The notes beneath the pieces were generated by a model. That model was not told the DNA's origin and searched no databases. It saw nothing but the letters and a program-made list of their open reading frames with translations. A stretch of DNA of 64,000 bases from Rhodosorus marinus CCMP1338 (taxonomy: Eukaryota > Plantae > Rhodophyta): contig JAMWBK010000012.1 in NCBI GenBank assembly GCA_029953675.1, positions 1 to 64,000 of the forward strand, in the 5' to 3' direction. Positions 1 through 33,954 of the stretch are shown piece by piece (position 1 is the first letter of the stretch; each line of letters opens with the position of its first letter). The translations under genes and the position numbers were made by a program.

Positions 1-458
1 AGACTAACGTAACCCCAGACTAACGTAACCCCAGACTAACGTAACCCCAGACTAACGTAACCCCAGACTAACGTAACCCCAGACTAACGTAACCCCAGAC
101 TAACGTAACCCCAGACTAACGTAACCCCAGACTAACGTAACCCCAGACTAACGTAACCCCAGACTATCGTAACCCCAGACTAACGTAACCCCAGACTAAC
201 GTAACCCCAGACTAACGTAACCCCAGACTAACGTAACCCCAGACTAACGTAACCCCAGACTAACGTAACCCCAGACTAACGTAACCCCAGACTAACGTAA
301 CCCCAGACTAACGTAACCCCAGACTAACGTAACCCCTAACGTAACCCCAGACTAACGTAACCCCAGACTAACGTAACCCCAGACTAACGTAACCCCAGAC
401 TAACGTAACCCCAGACTAACGTAACCCCAGACTAACGTAACCCCAGACTAACGTAACC
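1..458. repeat. Terminal telomeric array, 16-bp unit CCCCAGACTAACGTAA (~28 copies; C-rich on +, i.e. a left chromosome end)
   Basis: Near-perfect tandem repeat from base 1 with strong C/G strand asymmetry; only two variant units (A>T near 167, AGAC deletion near 337). The same unit recurs as short remnants at retroelement junctions. Confidence 0.93.
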
Positions 459-528
459 GTGAGCTTTATTGGGCAGTCGCCTAATGCGACGTAACACTAA
501 GCCGATTGCTATCTAGGGAATCACTCAC
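459..528 (-). mobile_element. 70-bp 3'-terminal fragment of family B retrotransposon inserted in the telomere
   Basis: Identical to 8073-8142 (3' UTR of the B RLE ORF); flanked by CGTAACC on the left and a telomere unit (527-545) on the right. Confidence 0.9.
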
Positions 529-623
529 CCCAGACTAACGTAACCGCGTACACTTTACTGAAGAACTCCCTATTGGAGCCCATTAAGAAGCAATAAGGAT
601 CCTATTGGTCAGCAAAGAAACCC

Positions 624-1538
624 CTAATGGGTTGTGTGGCTACGTTCTAAGATAGGGACGATGTCATAGTCTGCTTCGTCGACACGACGTGCCTGGGTGG
701 CAAGGATAGCGTTTCCTTTCCACAAAGTGCGGTTCAAGATCGCCCGAGCCTCACTTACTTGCGTTGCCCGCTGATCCAGGTGTATAGTCGCTTCCTTGAG
801 GAACTCACTCGCTTGTTGTCCCATCTGCCCAAATGTTTCCAGGCAGAAGGGGACGAAGATGTCGTCGTTATGTTCTCCGATACTGTCACGGTATTTGGAC
901 TCTTTAAACTTTTCCGCTTTCCGTGCCGCATACCCGGTCTCCCAAGACGCTTTGTGGAGGTGTGTTCTTTGCAAAGGCGAGGTCACCTTCACATCGATCA
1001 CGTAGAGCTTGCCTGTTCGTGGGTGTCGGGCTAGAATGTCAGGCCGAAGCCGACTGCCTTGGTAGTGTCCGGTCGGTTCTATTGTCACTTCTAGTCGCCA
1101 TTGTCTCAGCACTGTCGCCAGGGCGTCCCTGACCATGTTATGCCGAATTGTCCAACTGCCGGTAGAGCTGGTGCAGTGGTGAAGGCGTTGAATGCCTGCA
1201 GCGTCGTGTGGTTGGGAACATATCGTACACGTACCAAGTATTCGTACACCCGGCAGGGGTAATCCCAACAGTTGTCGAAGGCTCAGGTTCAGTTCTCCGC
1301 TACTTAGGCCGCGTCCGTGTTTCCTTGGCAAGTCTCGCAGCCAAGTACCCCCTCCTGATCCCTTGCAGGAGCGTATTCGCGCACGTGCCGTCTCGCTGAT
1401 CTCCGCGTTCTCCACCATTTCCTCGAATGCCCGTCGGTGACTCCAGTTGGAGAGGAGTTTTGGGTTGAACCGATCAAGGGCCTGTCGGGTGGTGTGTGCG
1501 GGTTCTCTGCTTGTTCTTGGCTCTCCAACGATTGCCAT
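624..1538 (-). CDS. Family A ORF2 C-terminal part: CCHC zinc finger + restriction-like (PD-(D/E)xK) endonuclease; out of frame with the RT part
   Basis: CTIC...HHC, RHNMVRD, RPDI...VIDVKV, KESKY, FVPFCLETFG motifs typical of RLE non-LTR elements. Confidence 0.9.
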   Translation of the reverse strand: MAIVGEPRTSREPAHTTRQALDRFNPKLLSNWSHRRAFEEMVENAEISETARARIRSCKGSGGGTWLRDLPRKHGRGLSSGELNLSLRQLLGLPLPGVRILGTCTICSQPHDAAGIQRLHHCTSSTGSWTIRHNMVRDALATVLRQWRLEVTIEPTGHYQGSRLRPDILARHPRTGKLYVIDVKVTSPLQRTHLHKASWETGYAARKAEKFKESKYRDSIGEHNDDIFVPFCLETFGQMGQQASEFLKEATIHLDQRATQVSEARAILNRTLWKGNAILATQARRVDEADYDIVPILERSHTTH

Positions 1539-3775
1539 TCTGTTAGGCGGAGTATGGGGGCCGGTGTTCCTCGTGCCAGGCAGCGTTTTGAGTGGAGGCT
1601 CGCTTCGATTAGTTGTGCTCCAAGTTGATCCGTCGAGTGGAGCAGGGGTCGAATGTGATGGTGCTCGGTCAGGTTCGTCGATGTGCAGGCATCGAGTAGC
1701 GCTCCTAGGTGGCTAGATCCAGTCCAATTGAGCTTCAGAGTCTGTCGCCAACTGCTGAAGAAGGCGAGGGGTTGTATTCGTGTTCTCATCGCTAGGCCTG
1801 CGCCACCCCATCGGCAAGGGAGCTGGATCTGCGCTTCGACCACGTCTTTTGCGGGTCCTGTGAGGCCCTGGCCTTCGAGGAGCGAGCCGCACAGTTTGTC
1901 GAGTTCCAGGAGCGAGATGCGATCGGCTTCGCGTGCGAGATTGGCTCCGTATTGTAGGGCGAGCGTGCGTAGAGCAAAGTCTAGACGCGGTCCTGCGCAG
2001 TAGCGGAATAGGCACAGTTTAATTGGTAGCTCAGTGGTCGGTAGACGGATGACCTCTTGGACGAGTTTTTCATGTTCTCGTTGTAGCTTCCTGTTCGCGT
2101 CTTGGACGTAGGTCCGTGTGCCAATAGGGATGGAATAAAGTTGGATTCCGTCCCGGGTGACATGTACGTCGGGAATTTCCCTGTTGACGAGTCTGGTCGT
2201 CGGCAGTTGGAGTCCAAAAAGCTCGCATTTCGTCCTTTGAAGTTGTGCGCCTATTTCGGGGAGGTGGTGCTCGCTCCAGTGTAGCGCTTCTTTCACGTCC
2301 TTCAGAGGGCCAAGTAAGGTGAGGTCGTCGTGGATTGCGCTAAGGGTGATCCTCGGAAACCGGTCTCGTAGTGCTCGTAGGAGTGGGGAAAGGGCGAGCG
2401 CGTGTAAAGCAGGTCCCAACGGATCGCCTTGTTGGACTCCAGTCCAGGCTCGGAGCTGGAGCCAGTCATCGACATCGCTGTCTCGCCATCCGAATTGGCG
2501 TGGGGCGCTCTCGCCTCGTGGTCCGTAGCTCATTGTCATAAGCGACTTCAATTCGGGGAAAGCTAGCTCGATGATACGGTTTGCGAGGCGTCGGTCGATT
2601 CTGTTGAACGCGTTTGCGAGATCAAGTTTGAGGAGCACGTCATTCGGGCGCGCTGCGAGGTGGGCTTCCGCGAGGTGGATGGCGTGTTCGCAGCCGCCGC
2701 TGACCGAGATGCCGAGTTGTTCCGGGAGCAGAAAGTCGCGAAGGGGCGTGGCGACAGCGCGAAGTGTCCATTGGGTGACGGCCTTCCGCAGTACCTCAGG
2801 AATCCCTAGCGGGCGTAGGCGAAGAGGGTACCCTTGTCTAGCTTCGGCAGACGTTCGCTTGTCTTTCGCGAGGAGTCGGTTGCTGCGCATGGCTTCGAGA
2901 AACACGTCAGGGAAGCTCTCCGGAGTGGTGGCAAGCTTGCGAAGGAAGCGTACAAGTACCGGTTGCGTTGTCATGGTGAGACTTCGCAGATGTTCGGCTT
3001 TGAGTCCACTCGGCCCGGGGGCTGTGGCGTACGGTAGGTGTTCCAGCGTTGACAGGAGGCTCTCGTCAGAGGCCAAAGTCGGGTCCCATATATTGCGTTG
3101 CAGTCCGTTGAGCTTTGCCTGTAGGGCGTCTTCAAGCTCCGAGGAGAGCGTTGCGGCCTCGTACTCAGGGAAGAGCGTAGTCAGAACGCGCCAGGTGGCA
3201 GGAGTCTTCGAGGCAAGATCGGTGGCCAGTAGGAGTTGGCTAGACTGGGACATACGTTGAGCTTTGGCGAGTTGTAGGGCTCGTTTCTGTCGGTGGCGGG
3301 TCTGAGGCGGCGGAGGTACGATACACTTGGTGTCAAGGGTTTTGCTGTGAGCAGTAAGGTGTTCCCACACCGTGGAGAACCTTCCGTCCATAACGGCGAG
3401 CATCTGCGCAGAAGGGGCCAGGTCGCCTGTGTAGCCGAGTGCGAGACTGGGGAGAGCGAAGATGAACAGGCGTGACAGGTTCGGCGCTGACGTATCAAGG
3501 GCAAGTTCCAGGGCTTTCGACATGAGATGGTTCCAGCGTGTTTTCAGGTTATCGGGGACGAATTGGCGAGTAGGCGTCGGAGCCTGAGTTAGCTGCCACC
3601 AGCGGTTGCCATTATCGGTTACGTTGAGAGTGAAGTCGTGCAGAGACGAGAGCCAGGCGTGCGAGTCGGTCTCGAAGAGTGACTGCGTCGAAGTGGGAGG
3701 TCGTTGGCGACGAGCACGAGCACGGCGGGATGAGCGAGAGCGGTTCGGAGTATATTCGTCTGAGGAGCTGCTCAT
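1304..3775 (-). CDS. Family A ORF2: reverse transcriptase (frameshift near 1470-1540 separates it from the RLE part)
   Basis: LRPLGIPEVLRK, QLGISVSGGCE, LDLANAFNRIDR, GVQQGDPLGP, AIHDDL, thumb LPCRWGGAGL. Confidence 0.93.
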   Translation of the reverse strand: MSSSSDEYTPNRSRSSRRARARRQRPPTSTQSLFETDSHAWLSSLHDFTLNVTDNGNRWWQLTQAPTPTRQFVPDNLKTRWNHLMSKALELALDTSAPNLSRLFIFALPSLALGYTGDLAPSAQMLAVMDGRFSTVWEHLTAHSKTLDTKCIVPPPPQTRHRQKRALQLAKAQRMSQSSQLLLATDLASKTPATWRVLTTLFPEYEAATLSSELEDALQAKLNGLQRNIWDPTLASDESLLSTLEHLPYATAPGPSGLKAEHLRSLTMTTQPVLVRFLRKLATTPESFPDVFLEAMRSNRLLAKDKRTSAEARQGYPLRLRPLGIPEVLRKAVTQWTLRAVATPLRDFLLPEQLGISVSGGCEHAIHLAEAHLAARPNDVLLKLDLANAFNRIDRRLANRIIELAFPELKSLMTMSYGPRGESAPRQFGWRDSDVDDWLQLRAWTGVQQGDPLGPALHALALSPLLRALRDRFPRITLSAIHDDLTLLGPLKDVKEALHWSEHHLPEIGAQLQRTKCELFGLQLPTTRLVNREIPDVHVTRDGIQLYSIPIGTRTYVQDANRKLQREHEKLVQEVIRLPTTELPIKLCLFRYCAGPRLDFALRTLALQYGANLAREADRISLLELDKLCGSLLEGQGLTGPAKDVVEAQIQLPCRWGGAGLAMRTRIQPLAFFSSWRQTLKLNWTGSSHLGALLDACTSTNLTEHHHIRPLLHSTDQLGAQLIEASLHSKRCLARGTPAPILRLTEWQSLESQEQAENPHTPPDRPLIGSTQNSSPTGVTDGHSRKWWRTRRSARRHVREYAPARDQEGVLGCETCQGNTDAA

Positions 3776-5292
3776 GATTGAGTCGACGAGAGGGAGTCGG
3801 GCGTGAGGTCGTCGACGGCGTTGGCAGGCTTAGGGCGCTTAGTGGGTGGAGCCACTTGTCTCTTGTCTTGGGCCGTCGAAAGTCCTTGCATCGGCTCTGC
3901 AGGGGTCACTGGTTGATCGCTAGTGGTGGAGGGGTCAGGCTCCGAGTCTAGTGGATCACGGGCTGTCGCGGCAGGCGTCTCAGGCGTGTTGTCCTCCCGA
4001 GCGGCTGGGACTTGGGCAGAATCAGCGCTATGCGTAGTCGCTGCGAGGGGTTCCGCACTCTCCCTCTCCAGTGCCGCCGGTTGAGGGTCAGCTACCCGGG
4101 TTCGGTCCAGAGAGCGTGGCTCTCTGCGCTCGGTTGTTGTCGAGTGCTCTGGAAGCTCAGGGTCGGAGAATGGCACGCGCAGGCAACTGTCGGGTGCTCG
4201 TTGAGCGTGAGCGTGGAGGCTGGCCAGGGTGCGATCGAGCTCGGCCCTGACGTGGCCCAGGAGTGCCTCTCGGTTGTTGGGTGGGAGACTCCTGCGATTG
4301 GTAACAATCCGCTGGATCCGTCGGTAGCGGAGCAGGTTGTGGATCAGTGCAGCGCGGGGATAGTCTGCCGGTTGGTGACGGAGCTTTTCCCTCATGCTCA
4401 GGTATTCGTGTGACGTTGGAGAGAGCTTGACAGCTTGGATACGTTGATCAGGAGGCAGGTGTGCTCCTCTGGTGGGTTCGAAGGCCCCTGCGTTGGTAGC
4501 GTCGCGGAGTAGTTGGAAGGCGGTATGATGAGCGATGACGTGTACATGATGATCAAAGTAGTCCAGCTGGAGCAGCGAATTTTTCTGAAGGCCGGCTAGG
4601 CGCTCGATATCCCAAGCATGATGGGCCTTGCTTCTGGTGGAGTCCCGAGGTCGAGCATTGAGTAGCACAAATGCATCAACGTCCTTCTGGCTCTGGTACT
4701 GCAGCCCATGAATGCTCGCGAAAAACGAGCGATTGGCAGCTGCTGGGGTCTGGTTGGCGCGGACACGTGTCGTCCAGCTCATTGGTTGAGGTTGAGCTCG
4801 AGTCCTTGTCCGTGCTTGCTCATTGGCCGTTGCGAGATCTGGGAATGCATTGGAATCGAGATCACGTGTCTCGGGAGATCGCGGGCGGGCTGCTGCAGTG
4901 GCGTAGTTTGCTGGTTCGTAGACAGGGAGGGGGCGTTGTGCCCTCGGGGCAGCTTTTTGTGGCGTCGTAGTCAGATTGTGAAGGAGTTGAGCCTCGGTGC
5001 CATTGGCGTGTGCCTGGGCTAAGAGACCCATAAACCGCAGCATAAGCCCATTGTAGAGCGGGGTCTTATGCTTGGGCGCGTCGAGATGCAGCTTCAGCGC
5101 TCCGCAGCTCAGGTCAATAGCCAAGGGAGTAGGTACGTCGTTGTCAAGTGCAGATGCAGTTGTAGGCTCAGAAACAGGTACGGGCAGAGGCTCGGGTCCG
5201 TCTGCCCTCAGGCTAACGGCCGGGAGGTCTTCCATCGTTGCGTCTGTGCAAAAGCCCCCCCCATCCGGAGGCACGGGCTCGAGAGTAGTCAT
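3772..5292 (-). CDS. Family A ORF1 (~506 aa from ATG 5292; putative RNA-binding, RRM-like core plus coiled coil)
   Basis: Long ORF whose TGA overlaps the ORF2 ATG (ATGA, 3772-3775); core aligns by eye with B and C ORF1s (xNxRP motif); N-terminal part homologous to 24010-24355. Confidence 0.75.
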   Translation of the reverse strand: MTTLEPVPPDGGGFCTDATMEDLPAVSLRADGPEPLPVPVSEPTTASALDNDVPTPLAIDLSCGALKLHLDAPKHKTPLYNGLMLRFMGLLAQAHANGTEAQLLHNLTTTPQKAAPRAQRPLPVYEPANYATAAARPRSPETRDLDSNAFPDLATANEQARTRTRAQPQPMSWTTRVRANQTPAAANRSFFASIHGLQYQSQKDVDAFVLLNARPRDSTRSKAHHAWDIERLAGLQKNSLLQLDYFDHHVHVIAHHTAFQLLRDATNAGAFEPTRGAHLPPDQRIQAVKLSPTSHEYLSMREKLRHQPADYPRAALIHNLLRYRRIQRIVTNRRSLPPNNREALLGHVRAELDRTLASLHAHAQRAPDSCLRVPFSDPELPEHSTTTERREPRSLDRTRVADPQPAALERESAEPLAATTHSADSAQVPAAREDNTPETPAATARDPLDSEPDPSTTSDQPVTPAEPMQGLSTAQDKRQVAPPTKRPKPANAVDDLTPDSLSSTQS

Positions 5293-5370
5293 ATCACTCG
5301 ATAAGCGTTCGTAGAAAGAATGAAAGTGTAACTTTATCACCACGATAAACTCCAAAGTCCAACCCCAAAT

Positions 5371-5404
5371 CCCAGACTTTTTTAACCCCAGACTAAACCC
5401 CAGA
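5371..5404. repeat. Variant telomere units at the A 5' / B junction
   Basis: cccagact...aaccccagactaaaccccaga. Confidence 0.75.
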
Positions 5405-5421
5405 TCGCAGCGCCCACTGAG

Positions 5422-6387
5422 TTGCCACTTTGCGTAGGACCTCCGGCACGCCTATTGGGCGGATCCCTGCCTTGGCCTGGGAGTTACCCCCCCTGTGCTG
5501 GCTTCGAGAAAGGCAGAAGTCTACTGCTACGCAAGGCTCGTAGCAGAAGGGGTGAGAATCGCCCGGGCGCGGTGGCGAGTTGGCGCAAGACCCGAATCAG
5601 TGCTACCTGAGTCTGTTGGTTCGCCCCTTGCAAATGTTCCGCGCGCATTCCACTCGGTCCAGGGCTCGTCCCTTGAGGTAGTCGTGCCACGATTGAGAGG
5701 AGGCCTTCGTCTGCAGCCGTTTTTGGATCCCACCGCCTCTTCAGTGTGTCGTTGTCCGTCGTGAGTAGGCCTTGGAGGGCTTCCACAATCTCCACCGGTG
5801 AATCCACACTGGCGGGGCTCGGAAAGAGCTGTTGTAGTTGCCGCCAGGTAGCCGCTGTGAAAGGCGCCATTTCGGTGGCCTCGAGTCTTCTTGCAGCATC
5901 CGAGAGGCGGCCGAGTCGTGCTAGTTTAAGTGCTTGTTTGCGGCGGCCATCGACTCGTCGACGAACGTCTTCGGCACCGTGTGGTGTAGGTGGGGGTTTC
6001 ATTGAGGCGGCTTTCTCCTCAAGGGCCCCCCCAGACCCGCTGGAACTCTCCTTCTAGTACATGTGCGACCTGTACCCCTGTGTCGAGGGTGGAGTGGCCC
6101 AGGACCAGACCCGGAAGGCCGACGAGAAGCAGGCTCGCTAATGGAGGTGCTGTCGCGTCCAGAGAAAGCTCGAGGGCAGCCCGAAGAAGCCGGCTCCATG
6201 TAGAAACGTGTGCTCGGGGCACGAAGCGTCGTGTGGGCACCGGGCAATGTGTGATGCGCGTCCAATGCCTCCCCTCCTCCGTGATCTCAGCTACGAAAGC
6301 GTTCCAGCGGCAAATCCAGGCCTCCCGGTCAGAGAAGAACAGAGGCTCTTCTCGTGGGCGTTTACGTCCCCTGCGTCTGGACGGCAT
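5422..6387 (-). pseudogene. Family B ORF2 N-terminal fragment (frameshifted, truncated)
   Basis: RHWTRITHCPVPTRRFVP, ALKLARLGRLSDAARRL, SPGPSG; homologous to 21553-22520. Confidence 0.8.
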
Positions 6388-7970
6388 TATGATTGCTCGT
6401 TGTCCTGCGCTTCCTGCTGAACCGACGGGTTTGTATTGGCTGCAGTTTCAGGTTGTAGTCCATTCTCGCTCGGTGTGGGGTCGAGGGGAGCTGGTGTCAT
6501 TTCTGCATCCGTGCTAGATCCGTTGGAAGACCGGCGCGAGCGCTTAAGTTGAGGAGGTTCCGGCAAGTTGCACGAGAGTTCCGCATGGGGATTGTCCTCT
6601 TCTTCCACATCCTGCGGTACTTGGGATGTTCCACCGGAGTCACCCTGAGTGGCAACAGTCCCACAGGCTGCCTGTGCATCGTCCGGAGACGACGAGGCTT
6701 CAGCGGCTGCGTTTGGTGCGGCTGCAGTCGTTAGGGGTTCCGCGCTCTCCCTGGATACCGCAGGTTGCTGTTGAAGGGCTTGTAACTTTTCAAGCCGTTG
6801 GTCCAGCATCTCGTGCACTCGGGCGAGAGTTGTAAACGAGAGATGTCGACGGCTCAGCCGCGCGCGGATGCGTATGATCTGCTCGATCGCTCGTCTCAGC
6901 GTTTGAGCCCTGACATCTCCGCCGGCGAGTCGTTGCCGCTCGTTGAACCCCAGCAGGTTATCCGCCTCTAAACCGTGCCCGGTGTACAGGCTCACCTGTC
7001 GATCGGGGTGTCGCATGGTAAAGGATCCGAAAATCCCAGTCCGGAACACACCCCGGCTGATTGCGCTTTGGAGAAGAGGAATTGCATCAGGGTGGCACAC
7101 GAGGCTCACGTGTGAAGAGATAAAGTCCAAATGCGCCACATACGAGCCGGGAATGCCCAACGCCCGGCAGAGGACCGTAGTGAAGTCAGAAGCAGCCACC
7201 TCATCCTGTCGTGGGGGACGGATATTTCGGAGGGTAACAAGCACTGGCGTGGTCTCAGGGCCCCAGCTGGCCCCTCCCACTGTGGCGTGTAACTGCTTCA
7301 GGGCGGCATGTTGCGTCTGCGGCCCAGGCCTTCGCATGGTGCGGATGGGTGTCTCTACACCGTTCTCTGGTACTTCTACCGCCGAAACCGCCGCGTAGGT
7401 GGGTCTGGGGGTGTCATTCCCAAGGGCCGGGAAAGCCGTCTCAAACCGGACACCCGCAGGGACACCTGTCCCGACCGGAACTTGATTGAAGCCCGTTCCG
7501 GCCGCAAGTTGATTGACCACCGCCGTCGGCCGGTGATGCGCCGAAGCTCCCGAGGGATTCGAAGTCTGTGCAGAAGCTTGCCACATGTAGGGCTTCTGTG
7601 CAAGTTCCGTGAGGCGGCTGGTGACATTATGTATCTCTGTGGTACTGTTAATTCGCGAGTAGAGATTGAAGACTGCTTTGTAGAAGTTCGCGATGTCCTG
7701 CTCCCCAATTCCGAGGGCGTGATAGCACTGATCGTAGCTTCGAAGTTGGTGGAGGAACGTGTTAGCGGGAGAGGATGACGTAGAAGGCTCTGTCCGACTC
7801 CCCTCCTGGCACGGTTCTTCTGGGCGTAAAGTAGTCGCTTGTAGTCCATCATGTGACCCATGCCCGTCCTCTCGTTCAGCAATTGGAGAGGCAGGCAGCA
7901 TTCCGCTCATTGCACCGGTATTCTTCGAATTCCCCTCCCCAAACGAAGGGGAAGTGCCAGTGTTTGGCAT
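6387..7970 (-). CDS. Family B ORF1 (527 aa; RRM-like core)
   Basis: Open 527-aa frame; TAA overlaps the ORF2 ATG (TAATG, 6385-6389); TYAAV and LVTLRNIRPP motifs; C-terminal half homologous to 20892-21553. Confidence 0.8.
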   Translation of the reverse strand: MPNTGTSPSFGEGNSKNTGAMSGMLPASPIAEREDGHGSHDGLQATTLRPEEPCQEGSRTEPSTSSSPANTFLHQLRSYDQCYHALGIGEQDIANFYKAVFNLYSRINSTTEIHNVTSRLTELAQKPYMWQASAQTSNPSGASAHHRPTAVVNQLAAGTGFNQVPVGTGVPAGVRFETAFPALGNDTPRPTYAAVSAVEVPENGVETPIRTMRRPGPQTQHAALKQLHATVGGASWGPETTPVLVTLRNIRPPRQDEVAASDFTTVLCRALGIPGSYVAHLDFISSHVSLVCHPDAIPLLQSAISRGVFRTGIFGSFTMRHPDRQVSLYTGHGLEADNLLGFNERQRLAGGDVRAQTLRRAIEQIIRIRARLSRRHLSFTTLARVHEMLDQRLEKLQALQQQPAVSRESAEPLTTAAAPNAAAEASSSPDDAQAACGTVATQGDSGGTSQVPQDVEEEDNPHAELSCNLPEPPQLKRSRRSSNGSSTDAEMTPAPLDPTPSENGLQPETAANTNPSVQQEAQDNEQS

Positions 7971-8000
7971 ATTTTACCCCAGGCGAACCAAACCTACAAA

Positions 8001-8067
8001 CTTAATTTCGAACCTTATCCAATAACCCCAGAAACCCTTAATTTCGAACCTTATCCAATAACCCCAG
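8001..8067. repeat. 31-bp direct repeat (period 36) at the 5' end of family B, each copy ending in TAACCCCAG
   Basis: cttaatttcgaaccttatccaataaccccag at 8001-8031 and 8037-8067. Confidence 0.85.
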
Positions 8068-8072
8068 TAACC

Positions 8073-8945
8073 GTGAGCTTTATTGGGCAGTCGCCTAATG
8101 CGACGTAACACTAAGCCGATTGCTATCTAGGGAATCACTCACAACAACCCCGCTACCGGGGTCTCATGCTACGTTCAAAAGAAAAAACAGGAACCAGTGG
8201 GTTCTCCAACTGGTCCGCACGTAGAGCGCCAAGCGCAATCGCCGCGTTGCCCTGCCATAGGATCCTGTTTAACTGGGATCGTGCATCCCTCAGCTCCTCA
8301 TCTCGATGCAACAAGTGTTTACAACTGTCCCGCAAAAAGTCTTGCGTCAACCTCCCGCTCCGCCCAAAGGTCTCTATCGCGATCGGGATGAACTTCTCCT
8401 CGGGCTTTTCCACACTCATCGCCTCTTTATAGTGCGCGAGCTTGTAGTTCTCCGCCAGTTTCGCTGCATACCCGTTTTCTGCACTGCCACGCCTTATGTA
8501 CTTTTCCTGTAGCGGTGAAATCACCGTCACATCGATCGCGTACTTTTGAAAGGTCTTTGGATGGGTCGCCACGATATCTGGTCGCAGCTGGTAATTCTCA
8601 AAATACCTCTGCGGTTCTTGCTGTATGTCAAGAAAATTCCATCGGTTGAGCCATCTCCCTAGCTCCGTACAGAGCTCGTCGTGCCGTCTCTGCCATAGTC
8701 CCGTCGATGTTGGACAGTGTTGAAATCGTTGCACCCCATTTGGGCCATGTTTCCTACGGCAACTGGTGCACTGCTCCGTTGTCCGCAACCCCGGAATCGG
8801 CAGCCCCAGCAGTTGTCGAACATTTACCTGCAATTCCTGTGAGTCCAGCTTTCTCGGCTCTAGCAACGGTAGTTCCCGCAGCCATACCCCGAACCCGAGC
8901 CGGCCGCCGATCGGATTCTTGCACGGTGTTCATGCGAAACGCCCG
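8073..8945 (-). mobile_element. 5'-truncated family B 3' portion (CCHC + RLE, ORF 8153-8866)
   Basis: CTSC...QHC, RRHD, RPDI..YAIDVTV, FIPIAIETFG; flanked by telomere remnants 8060-8072 and 8946-8967. Confidence 0.9.
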
Positions 8946-8967
8946 CTAACCCCAGACTAACGTAACC

Positions 8968-9684
8968 GCGTACACTTTACTGAAGAACTCCCTATTGGAG
9001 CCCATTAAGAAGCAATAAGGATCCTATTGGTCAGCAAAGAAACCCCTAATGGGTTGTGTGGCTACGTTCTAAGATAGGGACGATGTCATAGTCTGCTTCG
9101 TCGACACGACGTGCCTGGGTGGCAAGGATAGCGTTTCCTTTCCACAAAGTGCGGTTCAAGATCGCCCGAGCCTCACTTACTTGCGTTGCCCGCTGATCCA
9201 GGTGTATAGTCGCTTCCTTGAGGAACTCACTCGCTTGTTGTCCCATCTGCCCAAATGTTTCCAGGCAGAAGGGGACGAAGATGTCGTCGTTATGTTCTCC
9301 GATACTGTCACGGTATTTGGACTCTTTAAACTTTTCCGCTTTCCGTGCCGCATACCCGGTCTCCCAAGACGCTTTGTGGAGGTGTGTTCTTTGCAAAGGC
9401 GAGGTCACCTTCACATCGATCACGTAGAGCTTGCCTGTTCGTGGGTGTCGGGCTAGAATGTCAGGCCGAAGCCGACTGCCTTGGTAGTGTCCGGTCGGTT
9501 CTATTGTCACTTCTAGTCGCCATTGTCTCAGCACTGTCGCCAGGGCGTCCCTGACCATGTTATGCCGAATTGTCCAACTCCCGGTAGAGCTGGTGCAGTG
9601 GTGAAGGCGTTGAATGCCTGCAGCGTCGTGTGGTTGGGAACATATCGTACACGTACCAAGTATTCGTACACCCGGCAGGGGTAA
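8968..9684 (-). mobile_element. 5'-truncated family A copy (717 bp, near-identical to 546-1262)
   Basis: Direct match at offset 8422 with one visible substitution; 3' end at CGTAACC|; 5' end fused to a telomere unit through TAA microhomology. Confidence 0.92.
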
Positions 9685-9724
9685 CCCCAGACTAACGTAA
9701 CCGCGTAAACCCCAGACTAACGTA
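9681..9724. repeat. Interstitial telomere units interrupted by a 5-nt family A 3' terminus (GCGTA)
   Basis: gtaaccccagactaacgtaacc-gcgta-aaccccagactaacgta. Confidence 0.8.
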
Positions 9725-10344
9725 TTCCCAGGGCGGTATAGCAGTGGTCGTAGCTCTGCAGTTGGTGGAGAAAGGCGACAGCTGGGTCTGCTGTGGCCTG
9801 CTCCGCTGCACCCTGTTCCGCATTCCTCTCTGCCTCCTGTTCTGCTCCCCTATGCTGGTGCTGTTGCTGCTGCTGCTGCTGCTGCTCTTGTAGCAGCTCT
9901 TTCGCCCTCTCCATTTCGCGGGTACCCGAGGTGTGTGGGCCCGCGATCACAAGAGGCTCGGGGTACGGCCCGCGTACCTCCTTCACAATCATACTTGTAA
10001 CTTTTTATCAGCTTTTTCCGTCGTTTTCAGGGCGGTATAGCAGTGGTCGTAGCTCTGCAGTTGGTGGAGAAAGGCGACAGCTGGGTCTGCTGTGGCCTGC
10101 TCCGCTGCACCCTGTTCCGCATTCCTCTCTGCCTCCTGTTCTGCTCCCCTATGCTGGTGCTGTTGCTGCTGCTGCTGCTGCTGCTCTTGTAGCAGCTCTT
10201 TCGCCCTCTCCATTTCGCGGGTACCCGAGGTGTGTGGGCCCGCGATCACAAGAGGCTCGGGGTACGGCCCGCGTACCTCCTTCACAATCATACTTGTAAC
10301 TTTTTATCAGCTTTTTCCGTCGTTTTCCACAAACAAAGCCGTCC
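9725..10344 (-). mobile_element. Tandem duplication (period 299 bp) of the 5' end / ORF1 start of a B-related element with a (CAG)n polyQ tract
   Basis: FLHQLQSYDHCYTAL matches B ORF1 FLHQLRSYDQCYHAL; two near-identical units start at 9729 and 10028. Confidence 0.8.
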
Positions 10345-10416
10345 TAACCCCAGACTAACCGTCCTGAAAACGCCCCCGAGACTAACGTAACCGTAAGCTT
10401 TACTAACCCCAGACTA
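10345..10416. repeat. Cluster of telomere remnants with a 12-nt B-type 3' terminus (gtaagctttact); inner edge of the dense distal array
   Basis: ctaaccccagactaacc ... gagactaacgtaacc|gtaagctttact|aaccccagacta. Confidence 0.8.
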
Positions 10417-10549
10417 TGTTCAATGCTTCAATCCACAAGTTCACTCAATCAACGAACTGTCAAATCAATCTCCCCAAAACTATATTCTGCGGAATTGAAT
10501 ATTGATCATTTCTGAGCATTGACAGACTGTCACCACAATTTAATGGTTT

Positions 10550-10792
10550 TTCTATATGCACAATGAATTTTTGTTTAATCCGTGGAGACTGAAGGAAAAA
10601 CCAGGAGGGAAAAAAGACTAAGCGCGCCGAAGATCGCGCGCCTCCAACATCAAAGCAGCGGTCACACGCCACAGCCAGAAACTTAAACGGGTAAACAACG
10701 ACGAAAGGCGGTCAGGGCGTTCGCGGTTAATAATTCCCGCAGCCAACGAGAACCAACGGAATCCGTAAACCTGTAGAACCGTTTGAGCCGAT
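10550..10792 (-). mobile_element. 3' remnant of family E RLE element
   Basis: Homologous to 61370-61630, 43330-43670, 12130-12270 and 63715-63870 (DSVGxRWLREL..., 3' UTR ending gattaaac). Confidence 0.65.
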
Positions 10793-10818
10793 GCTTTGTG
10801 TGCACCTTACATGAGGTG

Positions 10819-11397
10819 TTACGCTGCGTTCCCTAATTCGTTACAGAAATTTTCCACGGTGCAGGCATATCGGAACGGTTTGTTCGTGTCTGTTATTCGG
10901 CACGGTTGCGGGGTATCTACGGATGGCGCCAAATACCCCCGTATAGCCTTTCCACGGTCCGTTAATACGGCAAACGCGAGAACTTCAAGAAGCCCACAGC
11001 ACGAGGCTTCCCTTTCAACGACCTGATGGATCCGCTCAGGACAGAGCCGCATTGACGCTTTCCCCACAGTTCCGACCGACTTCCTCCTTGTGAACCTCTC
11101 CTTTCCGGAAGGAAGCTGATTTCCCGCTGTAAAGATTCCGGCTCTGAGCTTTTCAAGCCTCAGAGTAGTCCTCTCCAAAGCAGAAAAAGTCGCCAGGAAG
11201 CAGCGTCTTTTCTTCCCATCTTCAACTGTAAGACTTACCGTCCCCAGCAAAGTACCATTTCTTGCCACGAGGAGAGCACGTAGTTCTTTAGTTTCGTAGG
11301 ATACTTTCTCCAACTGAGCAGCGCACGTTGCCGGCGCGGACCACGCCGTGTCCAAAAGCGCCAGGCTCAACGCAACAAGGATGATAACTCTCATCAT
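10819..11397 (-). CDS. Secreted Cys-containing protein, 192 aa (paralog of the 18373-19517 gene; lacks the C-terminal anchor)
   Basis: Signal peptide MMRVIILVALSLALLDTAWSA; clear homology to the N-terminal ~185 aa of the 19517 ORF. Confidence 0.8.
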   Translation of the reverse strand: MMRVIILVALSLALLDTAWSAPATCAAQLEKVSYETKELRALLVARNGTLLGTVSLTVEDGKKRRCFLATFSALERTTLRLEKLRAGIFTAGNQLPSGKERFTRRKSVGTVGKASMRLCPERIHQVVEREASCCGLLEVLAFAVLTDRGKAIRGYLAPSVDTPQPCRITDTNKPFRYACTVENFCNELGNAA

Positions 11398-11708
11398 ATC
11401 ACGCGCAAGACTCGACGATGCTAATCCGATTCGTGCCTCTGAGTGCTCTGGAATTCGCTACCCTCTCGTCCAAAAGTCTTCCCTCGCAGAAGCTAAACAA
11501 GCTCTCAGCTCCAGCCTAACCGTATTACCTTTCACGGGAGTGAGACCTTGCCCTTCCCCGCCATCTTCCTCCGCAGACAATTACCGTATATGTACTGAAC
11601 GAATGTGTTTGTTGGGAGACTAAGAAAGAACTTCGAGGTGGAAAAAGCCTAATACTGGCCAAATTCACGTGAGTCCGGAAAATACTGGCGTATTCCAAAG
11701 CCACCAAC

Positions 11709-11805
11709 TTTCGGATAGAAAGTTTTTCGGATAGAAAGTTTTTCGGATAGAAAGTTTTTCGGATAGAAAGTTTTTCGGATAGAAAGTTTTTCAGATAGAA
11801 GATTT
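11709..11805. repeat. Minisatellite, 16-bp unit CGGATAGAAAGTTTTT (~6 copies)
   Basis: Direct tandem copies; absent from the paralogous upstream region at 19.6-19.9 kb. Confidence 0.9.
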
Positions 11806-12109
11806 CACATGGGAAATTCCAGGGAGAAGGATAAACAGCCAACGGACAAAAAATTCAGCTCCAACCTAACCGGGTTACCTTTCACACATCTTCCTCCGCA
11901 GACAATTACCGTATATGTACTGAATGAACGTGTTTATTGGGAGACTGAGAAAGAACTTCGAGGGGAAAAAGTCTAATACTGGCCAAATTCAGGAGACTCC
12001 GGAAAATACCGGCGTATGCCAAAACCACCAGCTTAAAGGCGTCCCAAAAACTGGTCCCTGTGGATACGGTGCTTGAAAACTGCAGTCTGCAGTCTGCAGT
12101 CTCTTAGAT

Positions 12110-12270
12110 GGCTTTATTGGCTTTATTGCGCTACGAACGAATGGTTTAATCGGAGGCTGAAAAAAAAACCCCGAGGGGAAAAAAAGACTAAGCGCGGCGA
12201 AGTACTCGCGCCTCCAACATCAAAGCGGCATTCATGCGCCACAGCAGGAAACTTAAGCGGCTAAACAACG
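12110..12270 (-). mobile_element. 3' remnant of family E with an (AATAAAGCC)2-type tail
   Basis: Homology to other E ends; gctttattggctttattg on +. Confidence 0.65.
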
Positions 12271-12288
12271 ATTGAAAACCCCCTGATT

Positions 12289-13071
12289 GCGCTACGCAAG
12301 GCGTGAAAAGGAACTAAGAACTAGGTAGGGAAGCGTGCAAACCCAGGCGCCTAAGGCAAGCATGCTACTCAAATATCGCCACAGAGAGACACTTAAACGC
12401 CGCAAAAGTTCCAAGTATTCCACAGGATGGCTTTATTGGCATAGCCTGAAGCGCTACGCAAGGCGTGAAAAGGAACTAGGAACTAGGTAGCGAAGCGTGC
12501 AAACCCAGGCGCCAATGGCGCGCCTCGGCAAGCATGCTACTCGAATATCGCCACAGATACACACTTAAACGCCGCAAAAGTTCCAAGTATTCAACAGGAT
12601 GCTCAGTAAAACATTTCCGCAACCACTCCAAACCCGATTTCTCCACGTGACCAAAGCTTTCCACAATGAAAGGCTGGAATCGGTGGCAGCGACCCTCAGC
12701 GCGAGGCAGACTGGCTATACTCTCAGCATAGCGTCGTTCCTTCACGCGTCGAAGGGCCGAAACCGCTGCTCCCCGGCGGCGGGCGGCAGCCGTGAGATGG
12801 GCGCTTACCACAGGGCATGTAATCGCCAGGTCAACATATGCCGATCGTCTGGCGGCAGCATCGGAGACGAGGACATCTGCGATGCAACGGGGCGGTGCCC
12901 TATCCGAGACCGATCTGGATAGTTCCGATTCCGCCTCAACCGTATGCCCTACCCGAGTCAAACATTCGCTGAGAATGTACTTGAAGCGAGTGTGACGCCT
13001 CGTACGAAGACCTCTCAACAGTCCGCATGAACCTAAGAAGTGGTAACCACAAGCATCGATCCGACTCTCAC
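12289..13071 (-). mobile_element. Two stacked 5'-truncated family C 3' fragments (RLE ORF 12476-13018)
   Basis: GLRTRRH, CIADVLV, YVDLAIT, FQPFIVESFG; 3' UTR homologous to other C copies. Confidence 0.85.
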
Positions 13072-13129
13072 AGGGGAGTTAGGGGAGGTCGTGCTAACGC
13101 GAATCTCCCCATGGTCAGAAATTAAGCCG

Positions 13130-13800
13130 TCGATAGTCACAGAGGTAGCAAGGCCTCCCAGCAAGGTTTCCAGGTGTTATCTGGTCATGGTATCCGCCTC
13201 CCGTGCCAGGCTGCGGCCGAACGGGTAGGCTAGGCATCGTAGAATAGTGCATTTTGTTGAGTTGCAGGCGGGCCCCAAGTGCAGGGAGCATAGTTCGGCT
13301 CCAGCCTAGTGCTTGCTTCAGTTCCTGGGTCCCACGATGGTAATATCGTCATGGATAGCGACTATCGATAGATCGGAGAACTTTGTTCGCAGAGCCTTTT
13401 TTTTTTTTATAGGAACGGTGCGAGGGCTAGTGCATGTAGCACCGGCCCAAGCGGGTCACCCTGTTGCACTCCCGTAGCTGCTTGGAGCGTCAGTCGTGAG
13501 TACTCCGTTTGGTTCTCTCCAGGTGCAGAGCGCCAGCCGAAAAGCGTCGGCGAGTCCGCTGCGTCGCTTCCGTATCCAAGCCTGTAAACCGCTGCGAGCT
13601 CCGGAAAGTGCTGGTCCACGAGTTTCTTGGCGAGGCGTCGATCAATCCTGTTGAATGCATTCTCGAGGTCAAGCCTAAGGACCACCGCTTCTAGTTCGCA
13701 TGACAGATGGGCTTGGATCGCGTGAAGTGAGCGTTCGCATCCGCCACTGACTCCGATCCTTAGTTGTAATGGCACCATGAGCGTGCGCACCCTGTCGTAA
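13130..13800 (-). pseudogene. Decayed family B-type RT fragment
   Basis: LRLDLENAFNRIDRR, GVQQGDPLGP and IHDD, with internal deletions and a long T run near 13400. Confidence 0.8.
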
Positions 13801-13802
13801 CC

Positions 13803-14400
13803 GTAAGCTTTACTGGGCAACTGCTTAATGCAGCGTAACACTACTGCTAACACTATCTAGGGAAATACTTGCCCGAACCCCGCTACCGGGGTCTCATGCT
13901 ACGTTCAAAAGAAAAAAGAGGGACCAGTGGATTCTCCAACTGGTCCATGCGCAAAGCGCCTAGGGCTATCTCTGCATTACCTCGCCATAATTGCCTGTTG
14001 ATCTGTGATCTTAACATCGCTCAGTTCCTCGCTCCTGTGCAAAAGGTGTTTGCAGCTCTCCCGCAGAAACTCCTGTGCCATCTGTCCCGTCCGCCCAAAT
14101 GTTTCCACCGCAATTGGGATGAACTTGTCATCCGGATGTTCCAGGGTCATCACTTCCTTGTAGTGCGCTTTCTTCCACCTCTCCGCACATCTTGCTGCAT
14201 ATCCATTCTCCGCCTCACTACGCCTCAGATATTTCCCTTGCAGAGGAGACACGACCGTCACGTCTAGAGCATACCGCTGAAATGTCCTCGGATGCGTAGC
14301 AATGATATCCGGTCTTAGTCGGTAGTTCTCGAAGTACCCCTCCGGTTCTTGCTTGATGTCGATGAAATTCCAGCGATTCAGCCATCGCGCCAGCTCCGTA
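13803..14400 (-). mobile_element. 5'-truncated B-subfamily 3' portion (RLE) joined at CGTAACC|
   Basis: FIPIAVETFG; 3' UTR variant gtaagctttactgggcaactgcttaatgcagc. Confidence 0.85.
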
Positions 14401-14427
14401 CAGATTTCGTCATGCCTTCGCTGCCAA

Positions 14428-15742
14428 TTCGGGCTCAGCTCGCTCTACCTTTGCGATTAGGTGGATTTGGTGTTGCAGACCGTGGGCTCGTATGCTCGCC
14501 TGCGGCGATCGCCTCCTGGGCTACCGCGCTTTGTACCTTCGTGAGTTTTCGGATGCGGAGTGCCTGCCTTTTGGCTCGAGCACTGACTAGCGAAGACCCT
14601 GTGACCCTTCCGCCCCCGCTTTTGAATATCTATGATGGTCTGCAACAAGCGTTCAGTAAGTGCAACGCCGTGCCGGACGGGAATCGATCCAGATTTCGCT
14701 CCTGGAAGGAGCTGTTGTGGGGACGAGCGGAGGCGAGCGAGGACTCTCCCATCGACAGAGTACTCGCCGACGAGGGAAGTTAATCCCGGGTCACCGGTTG
14801 CAGAGTACCCGGGTCTGAGCCGATCGTGGAGTTCACGCACTGATGTGATTCAACATAGCCTCACCTGGGGCCAACACAGTGCCGCTCACGCAATCTTGCG
14901 CAACTCTCCCCTCACACCGCCTACCACCGCTGCTCGCCTCCGCGGCATGGGAGTCCATCTATCGCACTTGTGGTTAACCACGATGCCATCGTCACTGGGT
15001 CACCGTCTCGATGCCTTCCAGTTCCGCTCTGCCGCACGGATCTACCTGGGTTTGCCGCGAGCTTCGTGGAACTCTAATCGGCCGTCTTTCTGTCAGGGAT
15101 GTGAGAGTCGGATTGATGCTTGTGGTTACCACTTCTTAGGCTCATGCGGATTGTTGAGAGGTCTTCGTACGAGGCGTCACACTCGCTTCAAATACATTCT
15201 TAGCGAAAGTTTGACTCGGGTAGGGCACACGGTGGAGGTGGAATCGGAGCTGCCCAGATCGGTCTCGGAAACAGCGCCGCCCCGCTGTATCGCAGTTCTT
15301 CTTGTCTCCGACGCTGCCGCCAAACGCTCAACATATGTGAACCTCGCGATTACATGCCCTGTTGCCAGCGCCCATCTCCCTGCTGCCGCCCGCCGCCGGG
15401 GGGCAGCCGCTTCTGCCCTTCGCCGCGTGAAGGAACGACGGTACGCTGAGAGTAGGGCCAGCCTGCCTTGTGCAGAGGGTCGCTCACACCGGTTCCAGCT
15501 TTTCATAGTGGAAAGCTTTGGCCACGTGGAAAAGTCGGGTTTGGAGTGGCTCCGGAAATGTTTTGCTGAGCATCCTGTTGAATATTTGGAACTTTTGCGT
15601 CGTTTAAGCTTCTCTCTGTGGCGCTACTCGAGCAGCATGCTTGCTCAGGCGCGCCATAGGCGCCTGGGTTTGCACGCTTCCCTACCTAGTTCTTAGTCCC
15701 CTTTCACGCCTTGCGTAGCGCTTCAGGCTATGCTAATAAAGC
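14428..15742 (+). mobile_element. 5'-truncated family C copy (thumb, CCHC, RLE; frameshifted)
   Basis: LPLRLGGFG, CQGC...HFLGSC, IVESFG; 3' end GCTATGCT-AATAAAG. Confidence 0.88.
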
Positions 15743-15773
15743 GGTCATCACTAGTTAAGATCAAAGTCTAGCT

Positions 15774-20399: not shown

Positions 20400-20439
20400 G
20401 GGGTTACGTTAGTCCGGGGAAGTTACAGTCAGTCTGGGG
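20400..20439. repeat. Inverted (G-rich on +) degenerate telomere units
   Basis: ggggttacgttagtccgggg...agtctgggg. Confidence 0.75.
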
Positions 20440-20459
20440 CATCTACTGATGATGATGGT

Positions 20460-20887
20460 AGAAGTCTGGGGTTAGAAGCTCTGCGAACAAAGTTCTCCGA
20501 TCTAACGATTGTCGCTATCCATGACGATATTACGATAGTGGGACCGCTGCAGGAACTGAAGCAAGCACTAGCGGTTCTTGTGCCGTTCATATTTGAGACT
20601 TTTGGTCGAATGGGCCAGGCAAGCCTTGAATTTCTTCGAACGGCGAGCGCGCACTTGCATGATCGTGACTCCCATCTATCGTCGGTGAGGGGTCCACTAA
20701 ACCGCATTTTGTGGCAGCACAACGCTGCGCTAGTTGAGCACGCGATCGAGAAAGATCGCGCAGATAGACCGATATTTCCCCTAAGTAGATTTAGATGAGA
20801 CTCCTGGACAGGGAGTCCAGGTTTGGTTAGTGCGTACGTAGTGATCGTGTGATGCGCTACATTAGGTAGCTGCCCAATAAAGGCTAC
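20460..20887 (+). mobile_element. Internally deleted B-related element (RT motif joined to RLE end and 3' UTR)
   Basis: AIHDDITIVGP fused to VPFIFETFG; 3' motif gctac-attag-gtagc-tgccc-aataaag. Confidence 0.75.
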
Positions 20888-20891
20888 TGAG

Positions 20892-23800: not shown

Positions 23801-23953
23801 CAGCTTGGAATAATGGTTCAATACAACAAACCCTCTCTCGAGAGGCACACCATTGTGCATTCCAAAAGCTGGTCACCAACCGACGAATCTCCCCTGAAAA
23901 CCGAGCTCGAATACGGTCTGCCGCGGGATCCGGGTCGGGAGTCTGACTACGTG
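20892..23953 (+). mobile_element. Family B-subfamily element truncated at both ends (ORF1 C-half, TAATG junction at 21550-21554, RT ORF 21938-23467, decayed downstream)
   Basis: RPIGVPEVLRK, LDLENAFN, GVQQGDPLGP, AIHDDI; in-frame stops and frameshifts after 23467. Confidence 0.9.
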
Positions 23954-23985
23954 AAATACGAACGCTGACACCGAAAAAATTGAGT

Positions 23986-24010
23986 GGTTACGTTAGTCTG
24001 GGGTTACGTT
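23986..24010. repeat. Inverted interstitial telomere (1.5 perfect units, G-rich on +)
   Basis: ggttacgttagtctggggttacgtt. Confidence 0.9.
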
Positions 24011-33357: not shown

Positions 33358-33954
33358 TTAACGACGACAAAAGGCTGGGAGTGCGAGCCGAGCAACAAGA
33401 ATTGCCGCAATTACGGACCCCCTCCTGATCCTAGCAAAAATCAACTTTTTGCGGCACTTTGGTGAAGTATTCACTGGGATGTTCTACAGACGACCTTCTG
33501 TGAGAAGCCAACTTGAATCTCAAGAGGGTACCACCGTCGTAGGTGACGCGCAAGTTCATCACGAATGCGATTATGTCACCGAGTCCAATTCCCGGAGGAG
33601 TCAGAGCATTGCAATAAGCGTTGAATCCCCACCATCTGCAGCGTGACAAGAAGTATGCAACCAAGTTTTCCTGCGGAGTCAAATTCTGTCGTATTTACTT
33701 CAATTCCGAAACTTCAAAACAAGGTTTTCAATCCACAGACTATCGTAAGCGCAACCACGTCATAGTATCCTTTATTGGAAAGCTGCCTAATGCAGAACAG
33801 TACTCCCGGGCCAATGTCGCAGAGACCCAAGCAACATCCAAAGTCATCTTTCTCTCCTGCGTTGGGGCCAACGCGCCGACTCGAGCTCCCAACGGATCCT
33901 CTCCAAACAGATTGCGTCAGCTAATCTGGTACAACCCAAAAAAGGAAAAATGCT

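Follow-up and report, generated by a model that had tools for sequence, protein, structure and literature searches.

Among retrotransposons without long terminal repeats (non-LTR elements) that carry a restriction-like endonuclease (RLE), R2 has a single open reading frame (ORF) with N-terminal zinc-finger and Myb DNA-binding domains, and it targets 28S ribosomal DNA. Telomere-specific retrotransposons have been listed from insects, Giardia, Chlorella, a lizard, rotifers and a few fungi, with no red-algal example in a 2023 survey (PMC10088271). MoTeR1 and MoTeR2 of Magnaporthe/Pyricularia oryzae and the FoTeRs of Fusarium oxysporum are telomere-targeted elements of the RLE type and belong to the CRE/SLACS group; in MoTeR it is the 5' end that lies closest to the chromosome terminus, in FoTeR TAACCC comes directly after the 3' end, and the FoTeR authors placed Cnl1 of Cryptococcus in a clade with MoTeR1, SLACS and CRE (PMC7367193, PMC12857005). 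SART1 and TRAS1 of Bombyx mori, which belong to the R1 clade, insert in opposite orientations, so that either strand is usable; they have an apurinic/apyrimidinic (AP)-type endonuclease N-terminal to the reverse transcriptase and need a poly(A) tail for accurate initiation (PMC7265360). Here, we describe several element families (A, B, C and E) that stand in a 16-nt telomere repeat of the red alga Rhodosorus marinus (class Stylonematophyceae), in the first 64 kb of the chromosome-scale contig JAMWBK010000012.1 (1,155,867 bp) from GCA_029953675.1, which Lee et al. 2023 assembled from Nanopore data (PMC10250338); this whole stretch is called the window. We read them, with a probability of about 0.8, as telomere-repeat-specific non-LTR retrotransposons of the RLE-bearing group (R2, CRE, SLACS, NeSL), inserted by site-specific target-primed reverse transcription (TPRT) from a nick in the C-rich strand, at a telomere healed by telomerase. 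A non-LTR reverse transcriptase, a C-terminal CCHC motif with RLE, a constant 3' end and no LTRs were found, as in that group.

Compared with the described systems, the Rhodosorus elements share several features with MoTeR and FoTeR, including a reverse transcriptase followed by the RLE, insertion into telomerase-made repeats, the lack of poly(A), head-to-tail arrays with short repeat tracts between copies, relics inside chromosomes, and perhaps telomere-like partial repeats at 5' ends. The 5' ends of B and C hold one to three such partial units (GTCTGGGGTT, GTCTGGGATTTGGGGTT; a 36-bp duplication in C), not a long run of variant telomere-like repeats as at the MoTeR and FoTeR 5' terminus. However, the host is a red alga rather than a fungus, insertion is into a 16-nt unit instead of TTAGGG, several lineages with 40-50% protein identity coexist, and the polarity is opposite to that of MoTeR and FoTeR: the sense strand runs into the G strand, and therefore the other strand would prime. 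With SART and TRAS they have in common two ORFs, a precise position in the telomere unit, a fixed orientation and several families beside telomerase-type repeats, but they differ in the C-terminal RLE, the lack of poly(A) and the absence of any Pfam match besides RVT_1. R2 (8GH6, 9DOU, 9NL3) is the best structural match for the linker-CCHC-RLE region and the best PDB match for the reverse transcriptase, and site-specific TPRT with a target-derived RNA tail, as proposed here, would be a further likeness; unlike R2, the elements target a telomere, have two ORFs and show neither a zinc-finger nor a Myb domain that could be recognised. Cnl1 and GilM/GilT of Giardia are likewise telomere-associated non-LTR elements, with different hosts and telomere repeats, and are likened here by description and not by sequence. 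HeT-A/TART and the Athena-type Penelope-like elements, which attach to chromosome ends and for which an endonuclease is dispensable, differ, since the 3' ends observed here face the tip and the RLE is conserved.

The sequence-only reading, made from the letters of this DNA, had not recognised such a combination as described. RLE telomere elements are in fact known (MoTeR, FoTeR, Cnl1), and the supplementary RepeatMasker table of the genome paper already gives long interspersed nuclear elements (LINEs) as 9.26% of the R. marinus genome, with 9.04% labelled CRE/SLACS-type, but the paper is silent on telomere targeting (PMC10250338). The placement in CRE/SLACS and not in another RLE clade is the automated RepeatModeler label of that paper. 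We thus rate the kind of element as already known; what is new is that the host is a red alga, that the target is 16 nt long and that the orientation is the reverse of that in MoTeR and FoTeR.

A 16-nt telomere repeat and its insertion junctions

The window begins with a terminal telomere array (Table 1), with one base variant at 166 and one short 12-nt unit at about 335-346. The G strand of the unit is TTACGTTAGTCTGGGG, i.e. (TTACGTTAGTCTGGGG)n, and the C-rich strand runs 5' to 3' inward from the contig end, which is the polarity of a true, canonical telomere. Using an 18-mer of the unit, 37 matches were obtained in the window against 0.02 expected from shuffles, and isolated units occur as deep as 53.9 kb. 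A telomere that is still maintained, as had been supposed from the sequence, is supported because the terminal array is near-perfect over 458 nt and because 3'-truncated elements are capped by repeats in other registers, which points to healing. For example, the truncated C joins the repeat as GCGA/TCTGGGG and the truncated E as GGGAA/TACGTTAG (slashes mark junctions), which is consistent with breakage or erosion followed by telomerase healing.

Short tandem tails are carried by many non-LTR elements, and the array could be such a 3' tail, produced by the elements' own reverse transcriptase and not by telomerase; the related family D in the same window does have (TAAAGTCCAG)n 3' tails. However, the D tail repeats the last bases of that element, whereas neither the A nor the B terminus has any sequence in common with the 16-nt unit. 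In addition, the repeats cap not only 3'-truncated elements but also unique DNA (10404-10416; positions 10230-10270 of L007) in other registers, and the strand polarity is that of a canonical telomere, which together make a self-made tail very improbable. L007 belongs to a second chromosome end and lies 5-26 kb inward of the right end of contig JAMWBK010000007.1 of the same assembly, on which the proteins Rhodosorus marinus NDN08_004843 and NDN08_004844 are named (NCBI); the analysis thus covered two chromosome ends.

All natural 3' ends (9/9, eight in the window and one on L007) join the repeat in a single register, element/GGTTACG, or in full element/GGTTACGTTAGTCTGGGG, so that the C strand reads ...TAACC/element. 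These are two ends each of A1, A2 and B, one of A3, a 5-nt piece, and an A-like end on L007; two old copies show single mismatches. The A1 3' end (...CCCAATAAAGCTCAC in sense) stands at 458/459 and 8072/8073, and the B 3' end (...CAGTAAAGTGTACGC) at 545/546 and 8967/8968. At 9702/9703 only 5 nt (TACGC) match the B terminus, and at 10392/10393 11 nt (GTAAAGCTTAC) match A2, whose full 3' end stands at 13803. These six positions, and the claim of one common junction position, had been given by the sequence-only reading and are correct; three further junctions have the identical register, at 13802/13803 (A2), 53812/53813 (diverged A3) and, at the other chromosome end, L007 10342/10343. The flank had been described as CGTAACC, of which TAACC is constant, whereas at 8072/8073 the flank reads CAGTAACC and the unit is 7 nt short. 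If the register were random (1/16 each), agreement of at least six clearly independent events would have p <= 1e-6. No poly(A) tail or A-run was found at any element 3' end examined.

The 5' junctions are also constrained. In 12/14 cases the flank upstream of the 5' end or truncation point ends in ...GTCTGGGG(TT(A)), i.e. GGGG, GGGGTT or GGGGTTA, which is a 4-position range of the 16-nt unit (binomial p about 3e-6); the remaining two end at TTACG and TTACGTT. Taken together, the two junctions imply a target duplication of 2-5 bp (GG to GGTTA), slightly narrower than the 2-6 nt of duplication or microhomology first suggested. Some truncation points show microhomology, which reaches 8-10 nt in the 720-bp B copy, whose truncation point falls in such a stretch (GGTAACCCCA) shared with the repeat. 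Relative to the repeat, 14/14 fragments, inverted interior relics included, stand the same way round, with the sense strand continuous with the G strand. As in telomere-repeat-specific retrotransposons, insertion is at one position of the telomere unit and in one orientation. From 459 to 10416, every element is encoded by the minus strand and its 3' end faces the tip, as had been noted.

The 3' ends are constant and the 5' truncations variable (69 and 874 nt for A1, 720 nt and 4.8 kb for B), and self-comparison revealed no terminal direct repeats (LTRs) around B. This pattern bears on the idea that the elements attach to free chromosome ends, as do HeT-A/TART and endonuclease-deficient Penelope-like elements, and that telomerase adds repeats on top. 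The elements do lie at the very chromosome end, and telomerase healing does take place here. However, priming from the G-strand overhang would put the 3' end centromere-ward, whereas all observed 3' ends face the tip; with the constant 3' ends, the variable 5' truncations and the conservation of an intact endonuclease domain, we give end attachment even less credence than the self-made tail. A related model, an antisense template primed at the end, was rejected, as it predicts constant 5' and variable 3' ends, the opposite of what is observed.

The arrangement A1-telomere unit-B is present twice. The distal pair (A1 of 69 nt with full B) and the proximal pair (A1 of 874 bp with B of 720 bp) are independent insertions, because neither can be derived from the other by truncation, and the 99.6% identity of the two B copies indicates recent B activity. 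This repetition, in a window full of duplicated blocks, is what would be expected if the elements were not target-specific but had accumulated in gene-poor subtelomeres, with their junctions multiplied by segmental duplication. However, the junction is common to different families with different truncation points and recurs identically at the second chromosome end, and family D, which lies in the same subtelomere, never adjoins telomere units, so that location alone does not produce telomere junctions. Such an origin thus has the faintest chance of all the explanations considered here. In contrast to D, every A-, B- and C-type copy in the window and on L007 adjoins a telomere unit.

Coding capacity and lineages of the elements

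The two-ORF structure proposed for both A and B stands for B, whereas A is known from its 3' parts only, which do not show two ORFs. In B, ORF1 (3772-5355) encodes about 500 aa, and ORF2 comprises the reverse transcriptase (1304-3775) and, after a single frameshift at about 1488-1520, the C-terminal region (CCHC and RLE part, 624-1538). In C, ORF1 lies at 6387-7970, and the N-terminal part of ORF2 (5484-6387) contains stops. In B (3772-3775) and in C (at 6387), the stop of ORF1 and the start of ORF2 share an ATGA, which suggests that ORF2 may be translated by termination-reinitiation.

A Pfam match to RVT_1 was obtained on ORF2 (E 4.7e-13, residues 320-520), and the best PDB sequence matches of the reverse transcriptase were R2 proteins (E 0.004), followed by L1 ORF2p. 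Pfam gave no match on either ORF1 (B, C) or on the RLE part, and a PDB sequence search with the RLE part gave none. In the alignment of the ORF2 C-terminus, the motifs C..C..H.C (C-x2-C...H-x-C), RH, E, RPD and D-V-K are kept in 6/7 sequences. The AlphaFold model of this C-terminus had a predicted local distance difference test score (pLDDT) of 68 and a predicted template modelling score (pTM) of 0.70; its top Foldseek matches were seven R2 structures (E 4e-7 to 1.5e-5), and the remaining matches, all with E >= 0.06, were mostly other PD-(D/E)xK nucleases. With R2 as the only strong matches, the predicted structure confirms the assignment of the C-terminus as CCHC plus PD-(D/E)xK RLE, as the sequence-only reading had it.

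At least three protein-divergent lineages coexist (B, B' and C/C'), with 40-50% identity in protein sequence, in addition to the A subfamilies A1, A2 and A3. In the RLE part, B shares 42% identity with A1; in ORF2, its identity to C, C' and B' ranges from 38 to 49%; and the ORF1 of B and C have only 26% identity over 92 residues. The divergence of lineages recognised earlier is thus borne out, but the anatomy differs from the one first drawn: 5405-8059 is a third lineage, C, and 9725-10344 is a 5' fragment of E. A is represented by 3' parts and C by 5' parts only; a 24-residue overlap through the transcript protein P0121 (62% identity) hints that the two may be a single lineage, but does not settle this.

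Transcripts of related lineages are present in MMETSP and JGI data. Transcript L001, like L003 and L004, contains the last 28 nt of A1 at 96% identity. None of the 114 homologues found was a fungal protein, and there was a weak match (E 9e-10) to a Diplonema protein annotated 'SLACS reverse transcriptase'. For ORF1, the one homologue came from the R. marinus genome itself. Exact look-up of the window ORFs found B ORF2 and C ORF1 annotated nowhere, and P0003 had no record. A 2.1-kb metagenomic contig (L005; GCA_039819145.1, JBCBSL010000655.1), binned as 'Cyanobacteria bacterium J06638_22', encodes a reverse transcriptase-RLE protein, P0118, with 54% identity to B and with the reverse transcriptase thumb and RLE in a single ORF; L005 is probably red-algal DNA mis-binned into a metagenome-assembled bacterial genome.

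The 3' untranslated region (UTR) is 78 nt in B and 80 nt in the 874-bp A1 copy. The A and B 3' UTRs each fold into hairpins, though a shared structure was not established, and an Rfam search of 1-14500 for ribozymes and other RNAs gave two chance-level matches only. In the 5' UTRs, the full-length B copy has GTCTGGG/GGGGTT-like partial units, and in C the first 23 nt and a partial telomere unit are duplicated (the 36-bp repeat, 8001-8072).

Array anatomy, interior relics and neighbouring features

The features of the terminal array and of the interior relics are collected in Table 1. The distal 69-nt A1 fragment is 100% identical to 8073-8141. The 5-nt piece at 9703-9707 is possibly an abortive insertion, on weak evidence. 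At the 5' end of E, a perfect (100%) 299-bp tandem duplication (9729-10327) is either real or a Nanopore assembly artefact. In the innermost junction zone, the A2-type 3' fragment (10393-10403) is joined to GGTTACG, and unique subtelomeric DNA begins at 10417.

Table 1 Features of the window and of the second chromosome end (L007); positions are those of the window unless L007 is named.
Positions	Strand	Feature	Basis or remark
1-458	+	Terminal telomere array, 28.9 copies of the 16-nt unit AGACTAACGTAACCCC	97% match
459-527	-	Family A1 3' fragment, 69 nt, 5'-truncated	3' end at 459 joins GGTTACG
528-545	+	One telomere unit, 18 nt, between A1 and B	Repeat match
546-5383	-	Family B, apparently full length, about 4.84 kb	ORF1 and ORF2, self-comparison
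5384-5404	-	Irregular 21-nt telomere-like tract (TCTGGGGTT TAGTCTGGGGTT), caps 3'-truncated C	Register unlike natural 3' junctions
5405-8059	-	Family C, 5' end complete, 3'-truncated inside ORF2	Third lineage
8060-8072	+	Shortened telomere unit (GGTTA-CTGGGGTT in sense), between A1 and C 5' end	
8073-8946	-	Family A1, 874 bp, 5'-truncated	RLE part of ORF2 (ORF 8153-8866) and 3' UTR
8947-8967	+	Telomere unit, 21 nt, between B and A1	Repeat match
8968-9689	-	Family B, about 720 bp, 5'-truncated	99.6% identical to 546-1267
9703-9707	-	5 nt (TACGC in sense) equal to the B 3' terminus	In-register repeats on both sides
9725-10344	-	Element E, 5' end and first ~100 codons of a C-related ORF1, 3'-truncated	
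10345-10416	-	Innermost junction zone: partial telomere units, 16-nt filler, 11-nt A2-type fragment, last partial unit	
13198-14426	-	Interior relic: A2 copy (RLE part and 3' UTR, 13803-14426), then C-like fragment	
20402-26002	+	Interior inverted relic array, G strand on +	Self-comparison, ORFs
53796-53899	-	Old relic: diverged A3 3' fragment (53813-53881) between degenerate and intact telomere units	
528-545, 8947-8967, 9682-9702, 13796-13802, 23986-24010; L007 10343-10360		Examples of telomere tracts between two elements	
12431-17741, 26101-28531, 40526-42631, 47256-52077, 52100-53755; L007 13172-18550		Family D copies	

In the first interior relic, the A2 copy has 74% nucleotide identity to A1 and joins GGTTACG at 13796-13802, and 13198-13795 is a 5'-truncated C-like reverse transcriptase fragment. 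The inverted relic array consists, in order, of degenerate units (20402-20473), a 5'-truncated reverse transcriptase/RLE fragment, the 3'-truncated C' (ORF1 C-terminus 20891-21541, ORF2 21553-23985), the telomere tract 23986-24010, and B' (5'-truncated ORF1 24011-24352, ORF2 24369-26002); its orientation suggests a past inversion, inverted duplication or end-fusion event. The old A3 relic has the same register and orientation as the elements at the tip, and a 74-nt near-perfect palindrome (89% self-complementary) lies at 53969-54042, just inside this innermost telomere relic. A further relic was noted at about 33510-33790. On L007, housekeeping genes are followed by degenerate units, the A-like 3' fragment, AGTTACGTTAGTCTGGGG, and a 5'-truncated C-like element that points toward the contig end and is interrupted by a full-length D. 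A-type 3' fragments of about 70 nt recur three times (459-527, 53813-53881 and L007 10270-10342) and may stem from a preferred site of template switching or represent a short non-autonomous derivative.

The telomere tracts between two elements, of which there are at least 13, all measure 7-25 nt and so do not exceed 1.6 units, compared with 458 nt for the terminal tract. Their shortness may reflect insertion into the innermost unit, collapse or instability of long interstitial tracts, deletion at the target, or cleavage of the G strand at a proximal site. In MoTeR arrays, long interstitial telomere tracts have been reported to be unstable (PMC7367193, PMC12857005).

The non-LTR elements of family D are abundant and about 4.8 kb long, with an ORF2 about 32% identical to that of B and, in the copy examined, an RLE region without the PD motif. 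Its copies have a common 3' end, ...GGCTATGCTA(A/G)TAAAG, in many cases followed by the 10-nt tail described above, and short D 3' fragments are stacked in tandem behind other D 3' ends. Other features of the window include a sulfatase ORF (58724-60394) and two inverted ORFs at 33955-35208 (-) and 37000-38352 (+) that encode RTX nonapeptide repeats of the calcium-binding type (Pfam HemolysinCabind, E 1e-19 and 9e-38), which are 81% identical to each other over about 540 nt. The RTX nonapeptide-repeat domain is typical of bacteria and unusual in an algal subtelomere. A 715-codon ORF without a Pfam match (29346-31493, minus strand) contains 47.5 copies of a 12-nt repeat (CGGCTGGGTCAT) at 30165-30734.

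Proposed insertion mechanism and its significance

Under the reading favoured here, the ORF2 protein would nick one 16-bp unit in its C-rich strand, between ...ACGTAACC and CCAGAC..., and the freed ...TAACC-3'OH would serve as the primer for reverse transcription, starting where the element RNA has its 3' end (TPRT). A nick after ...TAACC fits both the orientation and the constant 3' register, from which the nicking specificity is deduced. The G-rich strand would be cut 2-5 nt away (after GGGG, GGGGTT or GGGGTTA), and this offset would produce the 2-5 bp duplication (GG to GGTTA), with the sense strand continuing the G strand and the 3' end tipward. All families terminate 6-8 nt past an A(A/G)TAAAG polyadenylation-like signal, so the element RNA probably runs into the first downstream telomere unit. 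By analogy with R2, the GGUUACG... tail of such an RNA could anneal to the nicked C strand; this pairing would determine where synthesis starts and account for the missing poly(A). Telomerase would keep maintaining the tip, an end eroded or broken within an element would be healed by fresh repeats, whatever their register, and would then receive further insertions; repeated cycles would yield the layered array of B, C, A and E, with older array relics up to 54 kb inside.

The same RNA tail permits a different account, in which the nuclease is not register-specific, any C-strand 3' end pairs with the telomeric read-through tail, and the junction is simply copied from parent to daughter. R2-type elements use co-transcribed target sequence, and a polyadenylation-like signal at this distance from every 3' end means that transcripts should enter the downstream unit. 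However, the register is common to lineages only about 42% identical in protein, and the 5' junctions, which are independent of RNA pairing, are nevertheless confined to GGGG-GGGGTTA in 12/14 cases; this constraint argues that cleavage itself may well be register-specific. RNA pairing more likely adds to the precision than replaces site-specific cutting, and we consider this account unlikely.

Several points weigh against site-specific insertion as we propose it. The RLE is only presumed to be sequence-specific, and the constant 3' junction could be carried over from parents if the RNA includes downstream telomere sequence. The 3'-truncated C' (23985) joins the repeat in the register of true 3' ends, and the transcripts with the family A 3' terminus (L001, L003 and L004) continue into AGTCTCCCCCGAGG and not into the repeat. 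The frameshift in B ORF2 leaves that copy interrupted, although in a Nanopore assembly it may be a sequencing error. A DNA-binding module was not identified, since Pfam gave no zinc-finger or Myb match in the ORF2 N-terminus and the AlphaFold model of its first 330 residues (pLDDT 48) was too poor for a fold search. Finally, the apparently exclusive association with telomeres is drawn from two chromosome ends.

A broader interpretation is that the elements and the 16-nt repeat are co-evolving, either in an arms race or in a partnership that caps or rebuilds ends. Both a shift of Rhodosorus to its unusually long telomerase repeat and the radiation of several lineages cutting at one TAACC^CC step would then result from this process. 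Insertion would be directed to the innermost unit, where telomere and subtelomere meet; the tracts between elements are much shorter than the array at the tip. We regard this as a speculative proposal, somewhat less probable still than junction copying by RNA pairing.

For red algae, telomere sequences are 'mostly missing or fragmentary' according to reviews (PMC7046594), and in the mesophilic Porphyridium and Rhodella, standard probes and telomeric repeat amplification protocol (TRAP) assays failed (PMC3622300). The genome paper reports that twelve contigs reach the telomere, without giving a motif or mentioning telomeric transposons (PMC10250338), and it was the only paper retrieved for Rhodosorus together with telomere. 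Literature searches with 10-mers of the repeat, in every rotation and on both strands, returned no relevant paper, and two metagenome scans gave 0 matches each, one to a telomere 22-mer and one to the A 3' end followed by GGTTACG. The unit TTACGTTAGTCTGGGG is a candidate 16-nt telomere motif for a mesophilic red alga. With this long unit, both insertion junctions, the target duplication and healing can be read to the nucleotide, which is impossible with repeats of 5-7 nt; for FoTeRs, the authors could not define target duplications owing to the short repeats (PMC7367193, PMC12857005). RLE elements seem to have arrived at both orientations, as did the AP-endonuclease pair SART and TRAS, and an endonuclease with a possibly long recognition site may be of interest as a tool for site-specific insertion.

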